The position numbers and the translations under genes are program-made. 64,000 nt of DNA, from positions 26,970,001-27,034,000 of the forward strand of contig NC_088805.1 in NCBI RefSeq assembly GCF_011386835.1, given 5' to 3'. Origin of the DNA: Chrysemys picta bellii. Taxonomy: Eukaryota. Numbering within the stretch: the first letter of the stretch is position 1; each line of letters starts with the position of its first letter. The notes under the pieces were generated by a model that saw only the letters and a program-made list of their open reading frames with translations, searched no databases and had not been told where the DNA came from. Shown here one piece after another: positions 5,291-37,672 of the stretch.

Positions 5291-6822
5291 TAGGGCTGTC
5301 AATTAATCACAGTTAACTCAATTATTGTGATTAAAACATTGATTAATCACACTTAATTGCACTGTTAAACAATAGAATACCAATTGAAATTTATTAAACA
5401 TTGTGGATGTTTTTCTACATTTTCAAAGTGTAGTGTACAGTGCTCACTTTATATTTTTATTTTATTACAAAGATTTGCACTATAAAAATGAAACAAAAGA
5501 TAGTATTTTTCAATTCACCTCATACAAGTACTGTAGTGCAGTCTTTATTGTGAAAGTACAATTTACAAATGTAGATTTGTTACATAACTGCACTCAAAAC
5601 CAAAACAATGTAAAACTTTAGAGCCTATTTCTTGTTCAGCAATCACTAAGACAAGCTTGTTTACATTTATAGGACAGAATGCTGCTGTCGTCTTATTTAC
5701 AATGTCACCTGAAAGTGAGAATAGGCATTCACATGGCACTTTTGTAACTGGCATTGCAAGGTATTTATGTGCCAAACGTTCATATGCCCTTCATGCTTTG
5801 GCCACCATTCCAGAGGACATGCTTCCATGCTGATGATACTCGTTTACAAAAAAAGTGTGTTAATTAAATGTGACTGAACTCCTTGGGGGATAATTGTACT
5901 TCTCCTGTTCTGTTTTACCTGCATTCTGCTATATATTTCATGTTCTAGTAGTCTCGGATGATGACCCAGCACATGTTCGTTTTAAGAACAATTTCACTGC
6001 AGATTTGACAAAATGCAAAGAAGGTACCAATGTGAGATTTCTAAAGACAGCACTCAACCCAAGGTTTAAGAATCTGAAGTGCCTTCCAAAATCTGAGAGA
6101 CACGAGGTGTGGAGCATGCTTTCAGAAGTCTTAAAAGAGCAACACTCCAATGTGGAAACTACAGGATCAAACTACCAAAAAAGATGCTGGTGGCATCTGA
6201 CTCATGTGGAAAATGAATATGCATTGGTCTGCACTGCTTTCAATTTTTATTGAGCAGAACTGGTCATCAGCATGGATGCATGTCCCCTGGAATGGTAGTT
6301 GAAGCATGAAGGGACATACAAATCTTTAGTGCATCTGGCACAAAAATATCTTGCAACGCCAGTTACAACAGTGTCATGAGAATGCCTGTTCTCACTTTCA
6401 GGTGACATTGTGAACAAAAATCAGGCAGCATTATCTCCTGCAAATGTAACCAAACTGGTTTGAGCGATTGCCTGATCAAGTAGAACTGAGTGGACTTGTA
6501 GGTGCTAAACTTTTACTTTTTTATTTTTGAATGCAGTTATTTTTTTGTACATAATTCTACCTTTGTAAGTTGCACTTTCATGATAAAGAGATTGCACTAC
6601 AGTACTTGTATGAGGTGAATTGAAAAATACTATTTTTTTACTGTGCAAATATTTGTAATACAAATAATATAAAGTGAGCACTGTACACTTTGTATTCTGT
6701 GTGGTAATTCAAATCAATATAATGTAGGAAACATCCAAAAAATATTTAAATAATGGTATTCTTTTGTTGTGTGACAGTGCGCTTAATCGTGATTAATTTT
6801 TTTAAATCACTGGACGGCCCTA
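5291..6822. mobile_element. Foldback hAT (ZBED1/Ac-like) transposon relic with about 550-bp inverted arms
   Basis: Ends TAGGGCTGTC ... GACGGCCCTA. Transposase remnants TALNPRFKNLKCLPKSER (plus, ORF 5894-6253) and a hATC dimerisation motif KYLAMPVTKVPCECLFSLSGDIV (minus, ORF 5563-5775), with a second copy of that motif on plus near 6330-6460. Confidence 0.85.
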
Positions 6823-19049: not shown

Positions 19050-19370
19050 GGCTAGGTCTACACTACGGGAGGGGGCTGGGGGTAGGGGGGGCGGAGAGGT
19101 CGACCTAAGATACGCAACTTCAGCTATGCGAATAGCGTATCTGAAGTTGCGTATTTTAGGTCGACTTACCTGGCTGTGAGGACGGCAGCGAGTCGACCGC
19201 TGCCGCTCCCCCGTCAACTCCGCTTCCGCCTCTCGCTGCGGTGGAGTTCCGGAGTCTATGGCAGAGCGATCGGAGATTGATTTTATCACGTCTACACTGG
19301 ACGTGATAAAAATTGATCCTTGATAGATCGATCGCTACCTGCTGATCCGGCGGGTAGTGAAGACGTGCCC
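19050..19370. mobile_element. PIF/Harbinger-type MITE, copy 2, a related family in opposite orientation
   Basis: Ends GGCTAGGTCTACACTAC ... GTAGTGAAGACGTGCCC, flanked by AAA. Its reverse complement aligns by eye with copy 1. Confidence 0.8.
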
Positions 19371-19726
19371 AAAGGCTTTCTGAAAATCCAAATTCACTAT
19401 ATCCACTGGATCCCCTTGTCCACATGCTTGTTGACCCCCCCCCACCCTCAAAAGAATTCTAGTAGATTGGTGAGGCATGATTTCCCTTTACAAAAACTAT
19501 GTTGACTATTCCCCAACAAATTATGTTCACCTATGTGTGACAGTTTTATTCTTGACTATAGTTTCAACCAATTTGCCTGGTACTGAAGTCAGATTTACCA
19601 GCCTGTAATTGCCGAGCTTAAAACAAAAAACAACAACAACTGAAATTTGTCAGATTTAGGCATTAGTTTGACGGGATATAATTTGTTTTAAAAGTAAAAT
19701 CTCTTTTACAGCCATGCAAGCTTCTA

Positions 19727-20107
<381 letters not shown>

Positions 20108-20561
20108 TTAGGAGACGCTTTTATTTCTTTGGTAGGACAGTACACAAATTATTTTCACAAGCCAAAGTAGCTCAAACATTAATTTATAAGAGGAAAATAG
20201 CATTTTTATCCTACAGTATCTAACAGTTTTTAATTCAGGCCTCTATAAACTTGCATGCCACCCCCGCCAACCCTACCTCGATGTTTGTTCAAAACTAGTA
20301 TGTGACAAGGTTCAGCAAGCATGCAATGCACATCAAGTCAGATTTTCCCCCACTTATGGGGCTCTTCCAGACTCATCTCTGTATTTTGGCATACTCAGTC
20401 TTCATGGTATCTTGCCTCAAATGTTCATTTCTTGTACTATGGTCTGAATCCAGACCATTTTGAAAAGCAGACTACAAGCGACACTGAGAAAGGAGAGGAA
20501 CTGAAATAGAACTGGGAAAAGACGGTTACTCACCGTTGTAACTGTTGTTCTTCGAGATGTG

Positions 20562-20726
20562 TTGCTCATATCCATTCCATTAGGTGTGCGCGCGCCGCGT
20601 GCACGATCGTCGGAAGATTTTTACCCTAGCAACACCGGCGGGTCGGCTGTGGAGCCCCCTAGAGTGGCGCCTTCATGGCGCTGAATATATACCCCAGCCG
20701 ACCCGGCGCCCCCTCAGTTCCTTCTT
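20562..20726. repeat. DIRS 3' inverted terminal repeat core (165 bp)
   Basis: Base-by-base identical to the reverse complement of 26581-26745. Confidence 0.95.
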
Positions 20727-20763
20727 GCCGGCTACTCCGACAGTGGGGACGGAGGGCGGGTTT

Positions 20764-20863
20764 GGAATGGATATGAGCAACACATCTCGAAGAACAACAG
20801 TTACAACGGTGAGTAACCGTCTTTTCTTCTTCGAGTGCTTGCTCATATCCATTCCATTAGGTG
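20764..20863. repeat. DIRS internal complementary region (ICR, 100 bp)
   Basis: 20764-20825 is the reverse complement of the element end 20517-20578, and 20824-20863 is the reverse complement of 26721-26760. The two halves overlap in TT. Confidence 0.93.
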
Positions 20864-20878
20864 ACTCCCAAGCCCAAC

Positions 20879-23767
20879 TTAGGTGGTGGGGTCGGAGTGA
20901 GACATTGCTGTGTGCAAAACCGCTGATCCAAAGGCAGCATCGTCCCTGGACTGCTGCACTAGTGCATAGTGTTCTGTAAACGTGTGGACTGACGACCAAA
21001 CCGCAGCTCTACAAATGTCCTGGATCGGAACTTGCGCCAGGAAAGCCGTCGAGGACGCTTGGGCCCTCGTGGAGTGAGCGGTGAGGTGCGGTGCTGAGAC
21101 ACCTGCCAGGTCATAGCAAGTCCGGATGCAAGACGTAATCCAGGAGGATAGGCGTTGTGAGGAGACCGGTGAGCCTTTCATTCGGTCGGCCACTGCAACG
21201 AAGAGTTGCGTCGTCTTTCTAAAGGGCCTTGTGCGGTCAATGTAGAAGGCCAGGGCCCTGCGTACGTCCAGGGAATGCAAACGTTGATCCTGGCGAGAAG
21301 CATGTGGTTTAGGGTGAAAGACCGGGAGAAATATATCCTGGTTGATATGAAATGGAGAAACCACCTTAGGGAGAAAGGCAGGATGTGGGCGGAGCTGCAC
21401 TTTATCCTTATGGAAAACTGTGTAAGGGGGCTCGGATGTAAGCGCCCTGAGTTCAGAAACGCGCCTTGCTGAGGTGATGGCTACGAGGAAGGCTGTCTTC
21501 CAGGACAGGTACAGAAGTGAACAGGTGGCCAGTGGCTCGAATGGAGGACCTGTGAGCTTGGAGAGAACCAGGTTGAGGTCCCACGTCGGAACGGGCTGAC
21601 GTTGTTGTGGGTACATCCGGTCTAAGCCCTTGAGGAATCTAACGACTATCGGGTTAGAGAATACCGAGGACGCGAGTTCCCCTGGATGGAAGGCCGATAT
21701 AGCGGCCAGGTGAACTCTAATTGAAGATATCGCCAACCCTTGCTGTTTTAGGGAGAGGAGATATTCCAAAATAAGAGGAATAGGTGCGTGCAATGGGGAC
21801 GTGGCTCGTTGTTCGCACCAACAGGAGAAGCGCTTCCACTTGGCCAAGTATGTGGTCCGTGTTGAGGGCTTCCTACTGCTCAGCAGAATCTGTTGGACAG
21901 AGTGTGAACACTGTTGCTCTGCCTGGGTGAACCATGGAGCAGCCACGCCGTGAGGTGGAGTGATTGCAGGTCGGGGTGACGCAGCCGGCCGTGGTTCTGC
22001 GTGATGAGATCCGGATACAACGGAAGCGGGATCGGTGTCTGAACCGAGAGTTCCAACAGCGTGGTGTACCAATGTTGTCTCGGCCACGCTGGAGCGACCA
22101 GAATTACCTGTGCCTGGTCTCTGCGCAATTTGAGCAGTACCTTGTGGACCAGAGGAAACGGAGGGAAGGCATAAAACAGGTGGTCTTTCCAGGGAAGGAG
22201 AAACGCATCCGAGAGGGAGCCTGGGGCTCGACCTTGCAGGGAGCAGAACACGTGGCACTTCCTGTTGTCTCGAGATGCAAACAGGTCTATCTGGGGAAAC
22301 CCCCACTTCTGGAAGACGGAATGTATGATGTCCGGACGGATAGACCACTCGTGCGTTTGAAAGGACCTGCTGAGTCGGTCCGCTAAAGTGTTCTGGACTC
22401 CAGGGAGGAACGATGCCGTGAGATGGATTGAGTGGGCGATGCAGAAGTCCCACAGGCGAATGGCCTCTTGGCATAGAATTGACGAACGTGCTCCTCCTTG
22501 CTTGTTGATGTAAAACATGGCCGTGGTGTTGTCGGTGAGAACTAACACACAGCGGCCCCGTAGGAGATTGAGAAATGCCTGGCACGCCAGGCGCACCGCC
22601 ATCAGTTCCCGAACATTGATGTGTAGGGCTAGCTGAGGTGCAGTCCACAGGCCCTGGGTATGGTGCTCGTTGAGATGGGCGCCCCAACCCAGAGATGAAG
22701 CGTCTGTGACCAGGTGCAGAGAGGGTTGTGGGGCGTGAAACGGCATCCCCTCGCAAACCACATTGTGATCTAGCCACCATGTGAGGGAGGTCAGGACCGA
22801 GTTCGGGATTGTGACCACCATATTCAGGCTGTCCCGATGTGGGCGGTATATTGATGACACCCAGGTCTGGAGTGGGCGAAGCCGAAGTCTGGCATGCCTG
22901 GTTACGTACGTGCAGGAAGCCATGTGACCCAGGAGGGTAAGGCACGACCTCACCGTGGTAGTTGGGAAGGCCTTGAGTCCTTGGATGAGGCTCGTGATGG
23001 TGCAAAAGCGATTGTCTGGCAGGATGGCTTGTGCGCGTCTGGAGTCTAGAACCGCACCGATGAATTCTATTCTCTGGGTAGGTTCTAGAGTGGATTTGTC
23101 CTTGTTGAGTAGGATACCCAACTTGTTGAATGTGCGCACTATTATGTGGACGTGATCGCGAACTTGTTCCTTGGTGCGACCACGTACCAGCCAGTCGTCT
23201 AGGTACGGGAACACCTGTATCCCTTGCCGACGAAGGTACGCTGCCACGACAGCCATACATTTCGTGAAGACCCGTGGGGCCGAAGATAGGCCGAAGGGAA
23301 GGACTGCAAATTGGTAGTGCACCCTGTTTACCACGAATCGGAGGAAGCGTCTGTGAGGCGGGTAAATAGCAATGTGAAAGTATGCGTCTTTCATGTCGAG
23401 GGCGGCAAACCAGTCTCCAGGATCGAGGGAAGGGATAATGGCCCCCAGAGAGACCATGCGGAACTTCAACTTTACTACGAATTTGTTGAGTCCGCGCAAG
23501 TCCAAGATGGGTCGCAGACCTCCTTTGGACTTGGGGATGAGGAAGTAACGGGAATAGAATCCCCTGCCCCTTAAATCCACCGGAACCTCCTCTATGGCCC
23601 CCATGGCGAGGAGCGTAGAGACTTCCTGTATAAGAAGTTGCTCGTGAGAAGGGTCCCTGAAGAGGGACGGGGAAGGGGGGGAGGAGGGGGGAAATGAAGA
23701 AAACTGGATAGCGTATCCCCTCTCCACCGTGCGGAGGACCCAACGGTCCGAAGTTATAAGGGACCAA
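20879..23767 (-). CDS. DIRS ORF3, tyrosine recombinase. The recognisable YR domain is about 20879-21934; the upstream part overlaps ORF2 in another frame.
   Basis: 962-aa open frame with SARRVSEL (catalytic Arg), HSTR at 21065-21076 (H-x-x-R) and EHY (Tyr at 20966-20968). The true start codon is uncertain. Confidence 0.9.
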   Translation of the reverse strand: MVPYNFGPLGPPHGGEGIRYPVFFISPLLPPFPVPLQGPFSRATSYTGSLYAPRHGGHRGGSGGFKGQGILFPLLPHPQVQRRSATHLGLARTQQIRSKVEVPHGLSGGHYPFPRSWRLVCRPRHERRILSHCYLPASQTLPPIRGKQGALPICSPSLRPIFGPTGLHEMYGCRGSVPSSARDTGVPVPRRLAGTWSHQGTSSRSRPHNSAHIQQVGYPTQQGQIHSRTYPENRIHRCGSRLQTRTSHPARQSLLHHHEPHPRTQGLPNYHGEVVPYPPGSHGFLHVRNQACQTSASPTPDLGVINIPPTSGQPEYGGHNPELGPDLPHMVARSQCGLRGDAVSRPTTLSAPGHRRFISGLGRPSQRAPYPGPVDCTSASPTHQCSGTDGGAPGVPGISQSPTGPLCVSSHRQHHGHVLHQQARRSTFVNSMPRGHSPVGLLHRPLNPSHGIVPPWSPEHFSGPTQQVLSNARVVYPSGHHTFRLPEVGVSPDRPVCISRQQEVPRVLLPARSSPRLPLGCVSPSLERPPVLCLPSVSSGPQGTAQIAQRPGTGNSGRSSVAETTLVHHAVGTLGSDTDPASVVSGSHHAEPRPAASPRPAITPPHGVAAPWFTQAEQQCSHSVQQILLSSRKPSTRTTYLAKWKRFSCWCEQRATSPLHAPIPLILEYLLSLKQQGLAISSIRVHLAAISAFHPGELASSVFSNPIVVRFLKGLDRMYPQQRQPVPTWDLNLVLSKLTGPPFEPLATCSLLYLSWKTAFLVAITSARRVSELRALTSEPPYTVFHKDKVQLRPHPAFLPKVVSPFHINQDIFLPVFHPKPHASRQDQRLHSLDVRRALAFYIDRTRPFRKTTQLFVAVADRMKGSPVSSQRLSSWITSCIRTCYDLAGVSAPHLTAHSTRAQASSTAFLAQVPIQDICRAAVWSSVHTFTEHYALVQQSRDDAAFGSAVLHTAMSHSDPTT

Positions 23768-24243
23768 GCACGGTGGAAGTGGGAGAGGCGATCCCGAAAG
23801 GAGGGGGCTGGATCCTGGGGGATGACTGGGGCGCCGTCCTCGACCGCACCTTCAAAAGTTCTGCCTGGGGCCTGAAGGTGGTCTAGGTGGCCCCTGGTTC
23901 TGGCCAGGTTGAGGGCCGGTCCACCTTCTTCTACCACCTCGCCCTCGCCTCCGGGCCGAGTCCTGTCTCTGACGAGGCGGGGGGGGGTAGAAGCGCTGAG
24001 GCTGCGGCCTAAACGGCCTGCGCTGGGGGCCCACAACATGCATCCCCAGGGAGCGCATGATTGTTCTCGAATCCTTGAGGCTCTGCAGGCGGGAGTCCGT
24101 CTTATCCGAGAACAATCCATGACCCTCAAAAGGCAGATCTTGTAGGGTTTGCTGCAGCTCCGGAGGCAAACCCGAAACCTGAAGCCAGGAGATCCTGCGC
24201 ATAGCGATACCCGAAGCCAGGGTCCTCGCCGCTGAGTCTGCAA
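21880..24243 (-). CDS. DIRS ORF2: reverse transcriptase, RNase H and Dam-like methyltransferase-like domain
   Basis: RPILDLR, LDMKDAYFHI, VLPFGL, YLDD (23194-23205), RNase H VTDAS / HINVREL / LTDN / ADRLSR, then DLFAS...YAFPPF. No stop over 787 codons. The track start is TTG, so the real start is uncertain. Confidence 0.93.
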   Translation of the reverse strand: MQTQRRGPWLRVSLCAGSPGFRFRVCLRSCSKPYKICLLRVMDCSRIRRTPACRASRIREQSCAPWGCMLWAPSAGRLGRSLSASTPPRLVRDRTRPGGEGEVVEEGGPALNLARTRGHLDHLQAPGRTFEGAVEDGAPVIPQDPAPSFRDRLSHFHRAWSLITSDRWVLRTVERGYAIQFSSFPPSSPPSPSLFRDPSHEQLLIQEVSTLLAMGAIEEVPVDLRGRGFYSRYFLIPKSKGGLRPILDLRGLNKFVVKLKFRMVSLGAIIPSLDPGDWFAALDMKDAYFHIAIYPPHRRFLRFVVNRVHYQFAVLPFGLSSAPRVFTKCMAVVAAYLRRQGIQVFPYLDDWLVRGRTKEQVRDHVHIIVRTFNKLGILLNKDKSTLEPTQRIEFIGAVLDSRRAQAILPDNRFCTITSLIQGLKAFPTTTVRSCLTLLGHMASCTYVTRHARLRLRPLQTWVSSIYRPHRDSLNMVVTIPNSVLTSLTWWLDHNVVCEGMPFHAPQPSLHLVTDASSLGWGAHLNEHHTQGLWTAPQLALHINVRELMAVRLACQAFLNLLRGRCVLVLTDNTTAMFYINKQGGARSSILCQEAIRLWDFCIAHSIHLTASFLPGVQNTLADRLSRSFQTHEWSIRPDIIHSVFQKWGFPQIDLFASRDNRKCHVFCSLQGRAPGSLSDAFLLPWKDHLFYAFPPFPLVHKVLLKLRRDQAQVILVAPAWPRQHWYTTLLELSVQTPIPLPLYPDLITQNHGRLRHPDLQSLHLTAWLLHGSPRQSNSVHTLSNRFC

Positions 24244-26371
24244 TGTCCAAGGAGGCCTGCAAGGAGGTCCGAGCCACCTTCTTGCCCTCCTCTACCATGG
24301 CTCCAAACTCTTCCCTGGACTCTTGGGGAATCAACTCCTTAAACTTCCCCATAGAGTTCCAGGAGTTGAAATTGTAGCGGCTCAGTAGCGCCTGTTGGTT
24401 CGCCGCTCTAAGTTGTAGCCCTCCGGCTGAGTAAACCTTACGGCCAAACAGATCGAGCCGCTTAGCCTCTTTTGATTTAGGCGCTGCAGCCTGCTGGCCG
24501 TGGCGCTCTCGTGCATTCACTGATTCCACCACCAGTGAACACGGTTGGGGGTGGGTATACAAGTACCCATAGTCCTTAGAGGGGACAAAGTATTTTCTTT
24601 CCACCCCTCTCGCTGTGGGTGGAATGGAGGCAGGAGTTTGCCATATCGTATCCGCATTCGATTGTATCGTGCGGATCAGAGGTAACGCCACCCTCGATGG
24701 GGCATCTGCTCCAAGGATGTTCACGATCGGGTCGTGCACCTCCACTATCTCCTCCGCCTGCAGGTCCATATTACGGGCCATCCTACGCAGGAGATCCTGG
24801 TGAGCCCGAAGATCTATCGGAGGGGGACCCGTACATGAAGTGCCCGCCACTGCCTCGTCCGGAGAGGAGGAAGAGGATGCCTCCGGTGGTACCGGATCCA
24901 AGGGGGGGTCCTGATCCCCTTGCTCTTGGGCCGGGGCATCACCTGCACTTGGGTCCCTGGTGTCGGGTGGCGTGGACACCGAAGCCTCCATGCCTCCTGG
25001 CGGAGGCCGAGAGATGGTGGATTCTGGGGCCCTTCTGACCGAGTGACCCGAGCGAGAGGTCGATGGTATTGGAGCCCCTTGCTCTTGGTGGTACGCCCAC
25101 GGGGTCCAAAACGACCAGTGAGATGGTCCATGAGAGTGGTCCTCTGCCATCTCTTGCCAGTGGCCGAAATTTTGTTCCTCGGCGTGCCCTTGAGGGGGGT
25201 ATGCCGATCTCGACAGGTCCTCCGAGGAACGAGACACCGATCTAGACGGCCATGGCGGTGCCGAGAGAGATGAAACCATCCCGGTGGGCTGCGGTGCCGC
25301 ACGGTGCCGGTCCGGAGATGATCTATCTCTGCGCGGTGCCGGCGATCGGTGCCGGGATCGCGACCGGTGCCGATGACCTCGTCGGTGCCGGGAGTCGGAT
25401 CTGGACCTCGACGAGGACCTGGAGTATGCCCGGTGCCGGGAGCGACCCCTCGACGTCGAGCGTCGACCGTAGCGGTGCCGAGAGCTACGTCTCGACGTTG
25501 ATCGGTGCCGACGATCATATCGGTGCCGAGACGAAGAGCGGTGCCGCGAAGAAGATCTTGGCCGCGAGTACGACCGGTGCCGAGACGGTATTCGGTGCCG
25601 GGACTGCGAGCGGCGTGGGGACCTGCTTCGGGACCTGGATCGGTGCCGAGGTTCCAGCCCTTGTGATGGCGGGCGCATCAAGGCAGGTTTCCCCCTCGAC
25701 TGGACCGTGCGAGTCAACGGTGCAATCGGTGCCGGTGGTTGAGGCGGTGCCGGCTCCGTGAGAGCTATTAAGTCTCTCGCTGCCGCGAAGGTCTCTGGAG
25801 TCGACGGGAGGCACTGTATCACCGCCGGCCTGGGGGGAGACGCTATCTGCACCGGACTCAACGGCCTCGGCGCCGGAGTCGACGGTGCCGGAGGCACCTG
25901 TTTTCGTTGCTCCACCGGTGGACGCGGCTCTACCCCCGGCACTGGGGGAGCTGGCGTCTTCGGCACTGATGTCCCCGTCTTATGGGCTTTTTTATGCCCT
26001 GGGGATAAGGACCGGCGCCGAGGCACTTGCTGTGTCTGCGGTGCCGACGAGGTCCGGTGCCGGGGAGGCTTGTCTGACGCCACTCGCGTGGTCGTCGCAG
26101 CCGGTGCCGCCGGGGCACTGCGCACCGAGGTGCTAGGTGCCGGGGCCTTGCTCGTGGAAGGAGTGTCCGGGCTAAGAGCCGCCTCCATCAGAAGTTGCCT
26201 GAGCCGAAAGTCCCGCTCCTTCTTGGTTCTCGGACGGAAGGCCTTACAGATTTTACACTTGTCTGTCTGGTGTGACTCTCCCAGGCACTTCAGACAGGAT
26301 TCGTGCGGGTCGCTCGTGGGCATAGGTTTAGCGCAGGAGGCGCACAGCTTGAAGCCGGGAGCGTTGGGCAT
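23852..26371 (-). CDS. DIRS ORF1, gag-like protein (N-terminal Cys/His finger, Pro- and Arg/Ser-rich linker, LAP2alpha-like C-terminal domain)
   Basis: ATG at 26371; CASC...HESCLKCLGESH...CKIC; RS-rich tract; WQTPASIPPT..ERKYFVP and RLDLFGRKVYS segments typical of vertebrate DIRS gag; 839 aa uninterrupted. Confidence 0.88.
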   Translation of the reverse strand: MPNAPGFKLCASCAKPMPTSDPHESCLKCLGESHQTDKCKICKAFRPRTKKERDFRLRQLLMEAALSPDTPSTSKAPAPSTSVRSAPAAPAATTTRVASDKPPRHRTSSAPQTQQVPRRRSLSPGHKKAHKTGTSVPKTPAPPVPGVEPRPPVEQRKQVPPAPSTPAPRPLSPVQIASPPRPAVIQCLPSTPETFAAARDLIALTEPAPPQPPAPIAPLTRTVQSRGKPALMRPPSQGLEPRHRSRSRSRSPRRSQSRHRIPSRHRSYSRPRSSSRHRSSSRHRYDRRHRSTSRRSSRHRYGRRSTSRGRSRHRAYSRSSSRSRSDSRHRRGHRHRSRSRHRSPAPRRDRSSPDRHRAAPQPTGMVSSLSAPPWPSRSVSRSSEDLSRSAYPPQGHAEEQNFGHWQEMAEDHSHGPSHWSFWTPWAYHQEQGAPIPSTSRSGHSVRRAPESTISRPPPGGMEASVSTPPDTRDPSAGDAPAQEQGDQDPPLDPVPPEASSSSSPDEAVAGTSCTGPPPIDLRAHQDLLRRMARNMDLQAEEIVEVHDPIVNILGADAPSRVALPLIRTIQSNADTIWQTPASIPPTARGVERKYFVPSKDYGYLYTHPQPCSLVVESVNARERHGQQAAAPKSKEAKRLDLFGRKVYSAGGLQLRAANQQALLSRYNFNSWNSMGKFKELIPQESREEFGAMVEEGKKVARTSLQASLDIADSAARTLASGIAMRRISWLQVSGLPPELQQTLQDLPFEGHGLFSDKTDSRLQSLKDSRTIMRSLGMHVVGPQRRPFRPQPQRFYPPPPRQRQDSARRRGRGGRRRWTGPQPGQNQGPPRPPSGPRQNF

Positions 26372-26580
26372 GAGCCCGGCCCCGCGGCCGGGGGAGAAAG
26401 GGGGGAGACGACCCCCTTAATCCCCTGGACTACTTAGAACAACTTTAAAACTACTTAACTAATTTACAACAAACTCTAGGACTATAACTATAACTACAAC
26501 TATGATACAACAAGATAAGCTAGGGAAAGTGGAGAACAGCTAAGCAGCGCTCCACAGTTCCAACGACCGTCAGGGGCGGT

Positions 26581-26745
26581 AAGAAGGAACTGAGGGGGCG
26601 CCGGGTCGGCTGGGGTATATATTCAGCGCCATGAAGGCGCCACTCTAGGGGGCTCCACAGCCGACCCGCCGGTGTTGCTAGGGTAAAAATCTTCCGACGA
26701 TCGTGCACGCGGCGCGCGCACACCTAATGGAATGGATATGAGCAA
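26581..26745. repeat. DIRS 5' inverted terminal repeat core (165 bp) with TATA-like GAATATATACCCC
   Basis: Identical inverted copy of 20562-20726. The element 5' end reads TTCTTCTTCGAGTG on minus from 26760. Confidence 0.95.
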
Positions 26746-27295
26746 GCACTCGAAGAAGAATGTTTTGTCTCTGTAATCCTGACTTTGTTCTAGTGCAGCA
26801 TTTTATGCAGCATCCTCTGGTTCTGAAACATAACACTGAGAAGAGTCTCAATGAGTTAAGCATATGGAGCAACTTAAAGTGTGTTCCTACCCTGAGAAGT
26901 GACTAAAAATGGCATTCTGTGTTTCCAAATGTATTATGTCTCTTTGCCTTCAGCTCAAAAGTGCTCAGTTCATAAGTTAAAAGGTGATCTAATTGCCGCC
27001 TTGCAGATGCCACCTGCACTCAGGGTCAAGTCTTTCTTTCTCATGCATACTGCTAGCAAGAGATTCTCCAAGCCAAATAATCTGCAACTTCAACTGTCTT
27101 CAAAAATGAAGTCCTAGTTATACATGTAATTGTACTGAAATATAATGGAGTTGTTCAGATAGTTGAGGGCAGAATCTTTACTAATGAAAATACAAGAGAA
27201 GGGAAAGAACCCAGCTTGACCCTCGGATTCCAAGGTGAGTTTGTAGGACAGGCAATTAGGAAACACTTGTAAACGGAGAAAATAAGAGCTTAAAG

Positions 27296-27490
27296 CAGTA
27301 GTTTCCAAACTGTGGAGCATTTCCCTCCTGGGGGAGAGGGAAAAGCGGGGCGCAGAGGAACGTTCGGAGCAGGTGCGGCAGGGCTCAGGCCAGCCCCCAT
27401 GGGGAACGCCCCTCAGCCCTGCTCTGCCCACAACCCTGGCCTCTGCTCTCAGCTCCGAGGGGGGAGTGACAAAAAGTTTGGAGACCACTG
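27296..27490. mobile_element. hAT MITE with perfect 8-bp target-site duplication GCTTAAAG
   Basis: TIRs CAGTAGTTTCCAAACT / AGTTTGGAGACCACTG (14/16); GCTTAAAG at 27288-27295 and 27491-27498. Confidence 0.9.
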
Positions 27491-27919
27491 GCTTAAAGTA
27501 AGTAACTGAAGCACAATACACAATTTCCCCAGTGCGATTTTTATGAATTACTTTTTCCAGAACCAAAATTTAAAGAGTCTCAGATACTATGTTGATGAGA
27601 ACTATAGGTAGTTTGAGAAATATATGTATTCTGCACCACAACATTAGCATTAATTGCAAAAGACCAGCCTGAATGGTACCTTACTAAAAACTTATAATCA
27701 AGTGTCTATGTATAGATCAGCCACCAGAAGCACCAAGAACAAATAACTTTTAGTCCAGACTCTGCTGGGGGAGTGATGCCAGGGGGTGAGGGAATTTAAG
27801 AACCCAAAGGATGCTCCTAATTTTGGTCCCCTGGATATCTCGCACAACTTGCTGTTGCTAAGCCATTGAGTCAGACCACATCTATTAATTCAGAAAAAGC
27901 TTCTGAAGTGTTATATTTA

Positions 27920-28297
<378 letters not shown>

Positions 28298-29072: not shown

Positions 29073-29528
29073 CAGTAAAAGCTGTGTTATCCAGCACTTT
29101 ACCAACCAGAAAGCTCTATTGGGACAAGGGAGGGGGTGTGGGGTGCCGGATCCGGGTGGTGCTCACCTCGGGCAGCTCCCTGCAAGTGGCAACATATCCC
29201 TGCTACTTCTAGGCAGAGGTGCGGTTAAGTGGCTCTGCACACTGCCCCATCCCGTCTCGAGCGCTGGCTCTGCAGCTCCCAGTGGCCTGTCTAGGCGTGC
29301 CTCCACCTAGGAGCAGCAGGGACATGTCGCTGCTTGCGGGGAGCTGCCCAAGGTGAGTGCCACCCAGATCCAGTACCCCCCTCCCATGTCGCAACCCCGT
29401 CTCCTCCTGCACCCAAACTCCCTCCCCCTCTTAGTTAACCGGATTCCCCCCCCCCTACACACACATATTGTTTAAACTTACCAGCACCTCCCATTCTCCC
29501 AACATGCTGGATAACAAAGCTTTTACTG
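29073..29528. mobile_element. Tc1/mariner (Tigger-like) MITE with GC-rich interior
   Basis: 24-bp TIRs CAGTAAAAGCTGTGTTATCCAGCA / TGCTGGATAACAAAGCTTTTACTG (23/24). The expected TA flanks are not preserved (CA / GA). Confidence 0.75.
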
Positions 29529-36788: not shown

Positions 36789-37672
36789 TAGAGTTACCAT
36801 ATTCAAACATTTAAAAAAAAGAGGACACTCCACGGGGCCCTGGCCCCGCCCCCGGCCCTGCCCCAACTCCGCCCCTTCTCTGCCCCCATTCCAACCCCTT
36901 CCCCAAAGTCCCTGCCCCAACTCTGCCCCCTCCTCTGAGCACCCCGCATTCCCCCTCCTCCCTCCCGCTCTGATCTTGGTTGGGGGTTGCTAAGTGCTTC
37001 CCTGCTCCCCATTCGCCCCACAGCCCCTATGCCCTTGCCTGCCCTGCTCCTCCTCACCCTGCAGCCTCTGCACCCCCCCGCCCCTGCAGCCTCTGTGCCC
37101 CCTGCACCCCCCTGCCGCCTCTGTGCCCCCTGCTCCCCACTCGCCCTGCAGCCTCTGCGCCCCCTGCCTGCCCTGCCGCCTCTGCACCCCCTGCCTGCCC
37201 TGCTCCTCCTCGCTCTGCAGCCTCTGCACCCCCCTGCCCCTGCAGCCTCTGTGCCCCCTGCACCCCCCTGCCGCCTCTGTGCCCCCTGCTCCCCACTCGC
37301 CCTGCAGCCTCTGCGCCTCCTGCCTGCCCTGCCCCTGCAGCCTCTGCGCCCCCCCGCCGCTGCCTGCCCTGCTCCCCCCACTCACCCGGCAGAGGGAGAA
37401 CTGTGGGCTCCACGTGGACTCAAACACTGCCGTGCTGCTCTGTGGGGCAGGAGGGAGTGGGGGAGGGGGAGGGACTCTGGCTGCTAGAGGCCCCAGTGGC
37501 TGTGAGCGGCTTTCAATCAGGCCAGGCGTCCAATCAGCCACGCCGCACTCTGCATGAGGGGAAAGGGGAAATCCCGGACATTTCTTCTTGATTAGAAATC
37601 TCCCCCCGGACGGCCATTTAAAGCTGAAAAACCCGGACATGTCCGGGGAAACCCGGACGGATAGTAACCCTA
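36789..37672. mobile_element. Non-autonomous hAT element with perfect 8-bp target-site duplication TGGTATAC and an internal minisatellite
   Basis: TIRs TAGAGTTACCAT / ATAGTAACCCTA; TGGTATAC at 36781-36788 and 37673-37680. Confidence 0.9.
37020..37380. repeat. C-rich minisatellite (CCCTGCAGCCTCTG-type units) with a 156-bp higher-order duplication
   Basis: TGCCTGCCCTGCTCCTCCTC starts at 37036 and again at 37192. The tract is open in all six frames because of low complexity. Confidence 0.9.

Follow-up and report, generated by a model that had tools for sequence, protein, structure and literature searches.

An intron of the painted-turtle SERCA2 gene contains a full-length DIRS1-like retrotransposon which, with a probability of about 0.85, was inserted in the germline recently as an autonomous element, still segregates and comes from a family of about a thousand near-identical copies that transposed until very recently. 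The element was analysed within a window of 64,000 nt (the whole stretch of Chrysemys picta bellii DNA under study, to which all coordinates refer). The SERCA2 copy is not special in itself among the members of its family.

Anatomy of the element and its place in SERCA2

An earlier note on this DNA had placed a full-length DIRS1-type element at 20517-26760, sense to SERCA2 and making up 78% of an 8007-nt intron. The extent and the intron share agree with our results (Table 1), and the DIRS1-type identity is borne out by both the anatomy and the proteins. The orientation is also as described, since the SERCA2 exons, like the element, are read on the minus strand of the window. The SERCA2 peptide is sauropsid-like. 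The insertion lies 445 nt upstream of a SERCA2 exon, and the element has a donor-like GGTGAGT at 20534, but no evidence of harm to this essential calcium-pump gene was found in this sequence analysis.

Table 1. Positions of the SERCA2 intron, the DIRS1-like element and its parts in the window
Feature	Position	Strand	Remarks
SERCA2 intron, GT..AG, 8007 nt	20072..28078	-	Would measure 1763 nt if empty
Full-length DIRS1-like retrotransposon, 6244 nt	20517..26760	-	Sharp ends common to 23 other copies with unrelated flanks
5' (left) inverted terminal repeat (ITR), 184 nt	26577..26760	-	165-nt core identical to the other ITR
3' (right) ITR	20517..20730	-	Includes outer extension of ~30 nt, 20517-20547
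Internal complementary region (ICR), 101 nt	20763..20863	-	Two halves with a 3-nt overlap; gives the sequence of the predicted circle junction
Crossover trinucleotide TTC (element sense)	26758..26760	-	Repeated at 20516-20518; empty-allele contigs start matching here
gag ORF, 839 aa, ATG start	26371-23852	-	UGA stop at 23852-23854
pol ORF, +1 frame relative to gag	21880..24291	-	RT, RNase H and candidate Dam-like methyltransferase domain
990-codon open frame ending in recombinase	20879..23851	-	In the frame of gag; starts at the codon after the gag UGA
Tyrosine recombinase (Cre-like), 363 aa	20879..21970	-	C-terminal end of the 990-codon frame

The element is bounded by inverted terminal repeats and not by the split direct repeats of the PAT or Ngaro type. 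Measured along the arms 20562-20730 and 26577-26745, the ITRs are 99% complementary over 169 nt. The 165/165 identity that had been claimed for their core was confirmed by measurement, with a single mismatch directly after the core. As this mismatch was present in all 24 sampled copies, it is a feature of the family and not a sign of decay. The outer extension of the 3' ITR is missing from the 5' ITR and pairs with the ICR. One half of the ICR (20763-20826) is 100% complementary to 20516-20579 over 64 nt, and the other (20824-20863) is 100% complementary to 26721-26760 over 40 nt, the two halves overlapping at 20824-20826. The exact complementarity to both termini described earlier is thus real, and 23 of the 24 sampled copies show this pairing without a mismatch. 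None of these copies has a target-site duplication. The TTC stands at both junctions of the element in the SERCA2 intron and is kept in the empty-site contigs discussed below, and the first base of the 3' flank is C in 12/24 copies (P=0.001). The CpG observed/expected ratio of the element is 0.83, whereas the window outside it has 0.22, in line with the reported absence of CpG decay. No canonical poly(A) hexamer was found on the sense strand of the element, but chance alone predicts about one there, and the absence is not meaningful.

This anatomy, read together with the Dictyostelium DIRS-1 model, suggests how such an insertion could arise. Reverse transcription would act on a transcript without the outer ends, and the ICR would template the joining of both termini into the junction that it spells. 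The Cre-like recombinase would then exchange strands between the TTC(T) core of the junction and a TT(C) of the target that matches it, giving an insertion without target-site duplication. DIRS-1 cannot retrotranspose without its ICR (PMC7192593), and both the 3-bp junction model and the long overlap of the tyrosine recombinase (YR) and pol frames have been described (PMC3266345).

Coding frames and the gag-UGA-recombinase layout

The three long open frames and the canonical catalytic motifs of the earlier note were recovered, all three frames on the minus strand. YLDD and the RNase H acidic residues were read by eye in the translations, and the recombinase residues were identified by alignment. 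Pfam at default thresholds names only the RT, the recombinase, Dam-like and LAP2alpha-like matches being sub-threshold when taken alone. The gag protein has a Cys-rich N-terminus, a long Arg/Ser-rich stretch and a LAP2alpha-like C-terminal domain (Pfam LAP2alpha E=0.066, below the cutoff; atlas feature match of 0.96 to LAP2alpha clusters). The pol frame is open from 24291, the start in the ORF list being the first TTG at 24243, and ends at 21880. Its RT matches RVT_1 above the cutoff (1.3e-21) and, with the RNase H, is of the Ty3/Gypsy-like type. The RNase H match (RT_RNaseH, 4.3e-4) scores 20.8 bits, below the cutoff of 24.8, and a Dam match (PF05869, E=0.0022, 18.1 bits, cutoff 28.1) follows the RNase H at the expected place for the methyltransferase-like domain, which Ngaro and VIPER lack.

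The catalytic domain of the recombinase lies in the 3' end of the long YR frame, beyond the overlap. Its homologues are about 940-980 aa long, with the YR domain spanning about residues 610-950. A single Pfam scan gave a sub-threshold match to Phage_integrase (7.5e-4), and a profile of 30 sequences matched Cre/Tre in the PDB at 6e-7. The structure model (pLDDT 88) was matched to Cre by Foldseek with an E of 1e-9 and a TM of 0.6-0.72. Among 30 aligned homologues, R170 is near-invariant (>=90%) and K202, H299, R302, W325 and Y335 are invariant. Collectively, these results support the presence of a tyrosine recombinase, in place of a DDE integrase, with a predicted Cre-like fold and conserved catalytic residues. 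The 990-codon frame overlaps pol over 656 codons that show no amino-acid constraint. This linker contains no stop, whereas 20,000 synonymous-codon permutations of pol gave 16.9 stops on average and never fewer than 4.

Gag and recombinase share one frame in this element, and the same holds for five divergent relatives whose recombinases are 39-44% identical, among them one frog genome and one marine metagenome scaffold. In all six elements this frame is broken only by a UGA after a U-rich codon, the next base being C in 5/6. The ~650 linker codons are free of stops though their amino acids are unconstrained. Two comparative loci with gag split across frames (L032 and L033) were left out, and a further one (L034) has a different type of layout, with RT and YR fused in one frame. 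Tentatively, programmed readthrough at the gag UGA may give long-overlap DIRS1-like elements their recombinase in the form of a Gag-linker-recombinase fusion, and pol (+1) would be entered by a shift at this stop or close to it. None of the six elements showed significant RNA structure in the 120 nt that follow the gag UGA (z -1.2 to +2.5), so a structured readthrough stimulator is not supported. Good P-site re-pairing for +1 slippage at the stop was seen in only 3/6 elements (UUU or CUU before UGA), which leaves the +1-shift half of the idea weak. No statement of recombinase production by gag-UGA readthrough was found in the literature searched. If the recoding is real, the single-frame gag-UGA-recombinase layout would explain the long overlap that has long been noted.

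Allelic state, copy family and activity

In four other individuals, carrying three organism labels, a contig of 3.2-3.3 kb covers the right flank up to 26758. These contigs continue for 884-944 nt past 26758 without matching the element. Their lengths fit flank-to-flank continuity, with predicted ends on repeat edges near 19614 and 29072, and from these lengths and edges we infer that the tails are the left flank. The contigs thus support an empty allele at the insertion site in 4/4 other animals, with the tails assigned in this way. As the contigs of four others run across the insertion point and lack the element, this insertion is probably polymorphic, as the earlier note had suspected in proposing a polymorphic or species-specific insertion. 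An old, fixed insertion was rejected on the same contigs. Heterozygous carriers may exist among the four animals because contigs can drop rare variants.

The search for near-identical copies proposed earlier was productive. At least 23 other full-length copies were found in the genome, 98.7-99.7% identical, with unique flanks, the same termini and no target-site duplication, so the other family members are not all highly diverged. A 43-mer of the ICR junction occurs 1156 times in the genome, against 0 for the control, giving an estimate of ~1,150 copies. All frames are open in 20/24 sampled copies. Variants common to several copies are mostly synonymous in gag (41 synonymous to 14 non-synonymous), pol (30 to 6) and the recombinase (52 to 15), a strong excess in each (P 4e-8 to 4e-12), which indicates that the copies descend from lineages kept functional by selection. 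There are several sublineages with terminal branches of 0-10 substitutions. The sampled copies are dispersed, and only 1/24 adjoins another DIRS end. Another copy (L003), with 99.6% identity and the same orientation, is found 25 kb from the SERCA2 copy. A segmental or assembly duplication involving these two was rejected on their unrelated flanks and 25 differing sites.

The SERCA2 copy has all its coding frames and cis elements intact. In a search of the whole assembly, only two of its substitutions were private, at positions 21830 and 25725, one synonymous in the recombinase and one changing Thr to Ile in a Pro-rich part of gag. Its nearest relative in the sample differs at 18 sites, and nine copies that share its rare alleles lie outside the sample and may be closer. 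The description of the element as very young is supported by there being only these two substitutions, by ITRs and ICR free of mismatches beyond the family-wide one and by the lack of CpG decay. Zero extra ITR mismatches give a 95% upper age bound of 2.8-11 My at assumed rates, and all ages depend on the substitution rate assumed. The earlier caution that ITR identity shows little decay and not activity applies with greater force, because ITRs just as clean were seen in 20/24 of the copies sampled. ITR identity thus does not set the SERCA2 copy apart, and as a clock for this copy it is uninformative.

A rather unlikely alternative is that the family has recently fallen silent, for example through piRNA or methylation, and that the SERCA2 copy is young and intact-looking with no transposition today. 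None of the runs recorded as RNA contains the element, and even the most similar pairs in the sample are 5-18 substitutions apart and not 0. DIRS repeats are methylated in painted-turtle gonads, and the DNA, methylome and transcriptome of this turtle are all rich in DIRS elements (PMC5438563). Small runs guessed to be RNA, none of them so recorded, contain 55-69% of the element's words, and contigs are silent on transcript strand or level. The distances between pairs come from 24 of ~1,150 copies, picked for likeness to the SERCA2 copy and not to each other. Against silence stand the segregating SERCA2 insertion, the intactness of 20/24 copies and one sampled copy without any private change. 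We favour a family that transposed until very recently and that may still be transposing. The SERCA2 copy may itself be competent for transposition, given a sequence with no disabling feature and a recently active family.

The filled allele is known from the assembly only, and the four other animals have an empty allele, as would fit a repeat misplaced in the SERCA2 intron during assembly or an insertion that arose somatically in the tissue used for sequencing. Either is very improbable: both junctions are precise and carry the exact termini of the family, and the TTC core is also found in the empty-site contigs. The two substitutions unique in the assembly further argue that the copy is not a duplicate of another locus. 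Slightly less probable still is an ancestral insertion with empty alleles produced by precise loss, such as excision by the recombinase at the TTC core. In principle, integration can be reversed by tyrosine recombinases, and the empty site is precise to a single base, but an empty allele occurs in all four other animals under three organism labels, the SERCA2 copy has almost no private change and no CpG decay, and we know of no report of excision of DIRS elements.

Significance and relation to known DIRS elements

To our knowledge, movement of a vertebrate DIRS element has yet to be demonstrated, and activity has been deduced in the literature from the intactness of copies and from young age profiles. 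With its thousand or so near-identical copies and at least one insertion differing between individuals, the turtle family would make a concrete system for rates of DIRS transposition in an amniote, and turtles are usually described as a slow-evolving lineage. The family would also be useful for the study of target choice by tyrosine recombinases and as a source of presence/absence markers. With a sense insertion of 6.2 kb near a SERCA2 exon and another copy 25 kb off, effects on splicing or inter-copy rearrangement are conceivable in carriers.

The only experimentally mobilised member of the group, Dictyostelium DIRS-1 (Malicki et al. 2020, PMC7192593), shares with the turtle element the ITRs, an end-restoring ICR, integration by YR and overlapping ORFs. 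DIRS-1 belongs to a distant host, is 4.8 kb long and targets its own copies in centromeres, whereas the sampled turtle copies are dispersed. Turtle DIRS1-like repeats with hundreds to thousands of copies and a gag homologous to LAP2alpha have been described (Abascal et al. 2015, PMC4495291), in a study on where the LAP2alpha domain came from, which left aside how old, intact or polymorphic single copies are.

Comparable in structure are vertebrate DIRS1-like elements of the Anolis AcDIRS2 type (Piednoel et al. 2011, PMC3266345), which are ~6 kb long, encode gag, YR and RT/RH/MT with a long YR/pol overlap, and have ITRs of ~140-165 nt, a right extension of ~28-30 nt, a T-rich 3-bp junction and no target-site duplication. 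Their ICR is likewise in two parts, of 39-60 nt there and 40+64 nt in the SERCA2 copy. The turtle element differs in host and family, in its TTC(T) core, in its length of 6244 nt and in its very long Arg/Ser-rich gag. Putatively active Xenopus elements of the DIRS-37_XT type (PMC9210276) also have a LAP2alpha-like gag, RT/RH and YR, along with a Dam-like MT for which the turtle element has a candidate domain, and these families contain intact copies with conserved ITRs and ICR and amplified during the past few million years. The single-frame gag-UGA-YR layout is shared by one X. laevis copy (L036). In contrast to the Xenopus families, with a recombinase only ~41% identical, the turtle copy shows site-specific presence/absence between individuals.

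Anatomy and proteins of the SERCA2 copy

The DIRS1-like element carries its long reading frames on the minus strand, as are the SERCA2 exons. It occupies 78% of its host intron, which is 8007 nt long and bounded by GT..AG, and its observed/expected CpG ratio is 0.83 compared to 0.22 in the remaining window. All points of the earlier note that were checked were confirmed, among them open frames, sense orientation, intron share and CpG content. A repeat scan of the window recovered the three inverted-repeat relations as that note had described them. Direct alignment of the inverted terminal repeats (ITRs) revealed an identical core of 165 nt followed by one mismatch, and an outer extension of ~30 nt on the 3' ITR only.

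Features of the DIRS1-like element and its host intron (window coordinates)
Feature	Position	Strand	Description
SERCA2 intron	20072-28078	minus	host intron
gag	26371-23852	minus	839 aa
gag UGA	23852-23854	minus	stop codon
pol	24291-21880	minus	open frame
990-codon frame	23851-20879	minus	recombinase at C-terminal end
ITR arms	20562-20730; 26577-26745		169 nt, 99% complementary
ICR half	20763-20826		64 nt, 100% complementary to 20516-20579
ICR half	20824-20863		40 nt, 100% complementary to 26721-26760

The internal complementary region (ICR) totals 101 nt, with a 3-nt overlap between its halves, and spells the 3'-end plus the 5'-end of the element as their reverse complement. TTC is common to the predicted circle junction and the integrated copy, and the 3' flank opened with C in 12 of 24 sampled copies (P=0.001). 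From the model and experiments for DIRS-1 (PMC7192593, PMC3266345), a sub-genomic transcript would be converted to cDNA, the ICR would act as the template on which the ends are restored and joined, and the recombinase would insert the joined product at a short matching target.

In Pfam searches, pol matched RVT_1 (1.3e-21), with RT_RNaseH below threshold, and a permissive scan gave a sub-threshold Dam-like methyltransferase match at its C-terminus (E 0.0022). The permissive scan also gave SAM-like and Phage_integrase matches to the recombinase (the 363 C-terminal residues of the long frame). Because both were sub-threshold, the recombinase was put to further tests. Exhaustive searching recovered 10,950 relatives, and 30 relatives were aligned: K202, H299, R302, W325 and Y335 were invariant and R170 was near-invariant (≥90%); the profile of this alignment matched Cre/Tre at 6e-7. 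The leading match to the structural model (pLDDT 88) was Cre, along its full length (E 1e-9, TM up to 0.72); Xer and lambda integrases came next. Given its ITRs, its ICR, the methyltransferase-like match and a long overlap of the tyrosine recombinase frame with pol, the element is DIRS1-like as defined by Piednoel et al. 2011 (PMC3266345). Residues 590-756 of gag showed a weak LAP2alpha match in the permissive scan, and by language-model features the gag C-terminal domain was nearest to LAP2alpha-bearing chordate clusters (0.96), in agreement with Abascal et al. 2015 (PMC4495291) and a Xenopus survey (PMC9210276).

Several further features were observed. Residues ~245-345 of gag (window 25344-25639), ~100 residues encoded by degenerate 18-nt repeats, are nearly all Arg/Ser/His and resemble splicing-factor RS domains; several alternative frames are open here on both strands, probably owing to base composition. 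Within the 3' terminal extension, a donor-like GGTGAGT lies in sense at window 20534 (element position 6227), 463 nt from the next downstream SERCA2 exon; the motif is a component of the terminus and ICR in every copy. Beyond the SERCA2 exon at 20071, the downstream intron holds a 245-nt SINE-like repeat (19370-19614) whose copies number in the thousands, with 87-91% identity. In a different SERCA2 intron, two overlapping ORFs of >200 aa on opposite strands (36980-37640) may be another repeat.

Family copies and a probable empty allele at the SERCA2 site

The near-identical copies for which the earlier note had proposed a search were found in the 2.37-Gb assembly: at least 23 further full-length copies are 98.7-99.7% identical to the SERCA2 copy (scoring covered 24 of 6069 first-look candidates). 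The 24 sampled copies have unrelated flanks, none shows a target-site duplication, and their terminal sequences are alike except in L003, a copy 2 nt short at its end. All three frames are open in 20/24, the ITRs lack any mismatch besides the family-wide one in 20/24, and ICR pairing is perfect in 23/24. A 43-mer spanning the ICR junction occurred 1156 times genome-wide at ≤3 mismatches, a count that may take in non-autonomous derivatives, compared to 0 for the reversed control. The copies group into several sublineages, whose terminal branches are 0-10 substitutions long. Variants common to at least two copies were mostly synonymous (synonymous:non-synonymous, gag 41:14, pol 30:6, recombinase 26:9; expected 0.28-0.29; P between 4e-8 and 4e-12), and the copies therefore stem from source lineages held functional by selection. 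This bias is the mark of autonomous elements with recent replication.

Five bases of the SERCA2 copy were singletons among the 24 sampled copies. Whole-genome 31-mer searches left two of them, at window 25725 and 21830, as private; the remaining three each occur at 1-5 other loci. Of the private changes, one is a synonymous substitution in the recombinase and the other replaces Thr with Ile in a Pro-rich gag segment. Two changes in 6244 nt correspond to ~0.16-0.64 My at assumed rates of 2e-9 to 0.5e-9 substitutions per site per year, an upper bound because reverse-transcription errors count too.

To assess other animals, we compared window 25700-27900 with contigs of four whole-genome runs: one run came from another sample bearing the organism label of the source, two came from samples with a second label, and a third label applied to the last. 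Each run contributed one contig, 3227-3290 nt long, that covered 26758-27900 with 1-7 differences and extended ~1200 nt rightward and 884-944 nt leftward, the left portion having no match to the element. The match begins at 26758, a 3-nt GAA (TTC in element sense) that is repeated at 20516-20518. If the left portion were the window's left flank, one end of each contig would fall near 19572-19632 and the other near 29100. At ~19614 a high-copy repeat of 245 nt stops, and at ~29072 another repeat starts; k-mer contigs are expected to break at such edges, which fits the predicted ends. We read these contigs, which may lose rare variants, as an empty allele at the SERCA2 site in 4/4 other animals, with the left tails assigned from lengths and repeat edges. 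On this reading they pass the insertion point without the element, in line with the earlier note's suggestion of a possibly polymorphic insertion.

L003 (G000:C15:26958987-26965228) lies ~25 kb off, outside the low-coordinate side of the window, and is 99.6% identical to the SERCA2 copy (25 differences), in the same orientation and with unrelated flanks. The two form direct 6.2-kb repeats around the 3' part of SERCA2, which could allow unequal recombination. Another copy, L005 (G000:C1:862779-869022), adjoins the inverted end of a DIRS element that is more diverged (84-94% identity); insertion of DIRS into DIRS therefore happens in the family.

The gag-UGA-recombinase frame

The gag and 990-codon frames constitute one reading frame whose sole interruption is the gag UGA; relative to gag, pol lies in the +1 frame. 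Across the 656 codons overlapping pol, the 990-codon frame has 0 stops, compared to a mean of 16.9 and a minimum of 4 in 20,000 permutations of pol synonymous codons; the third frame of the pol region has 25. Stop avoidance spans the whole overlap, also upstream of the first in-frame ATG. The overlap amino acids are unconstrained (shared variants, 3 synonymous : 33 non-synonymous). Five divergent long-overlap DIRS1-like elements (L031, L035, L036, L037 and L038) share this layout; one comes from a Logan contig, two come from ENA metagenome contigs and two from amphibian-like assemblies. UGA is the stop in 6/6 elements, with the long frame running from the next codon and pol in +1. The codon before UGA is UUU, UUC, CUU or UUA, and the base after it is C in 5/6. 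No significant RNA structure was detected after the gag UGA in the six elements. The layout suggests that UGA readthrough might produce a Gag-linker-recombinase fusion. A search of the accessible literature found no paper linking DIRS1 to readthrough.

Relation to known DIRS1-like elements

DIRS1-like elements are known from lizards, frogs, fishes and turtles (PMC3266345, PMC9210276, PMC5438563, PMC4495291), and their anatomy, 3-bp junction and long overlap have been described (PMC3266345). Putatively active copies were reported in Xenopus (PMC9210276), and in the painted turtle, DIRS ranks with the most abundant repeats (PMC5438563). To this, the present analysis adds site-specific evidence for polymorphism of one copy in an essential gene, family-level evidence of very recent activity, and the putative recoding layout of the gag-UGA-recombinase frame.
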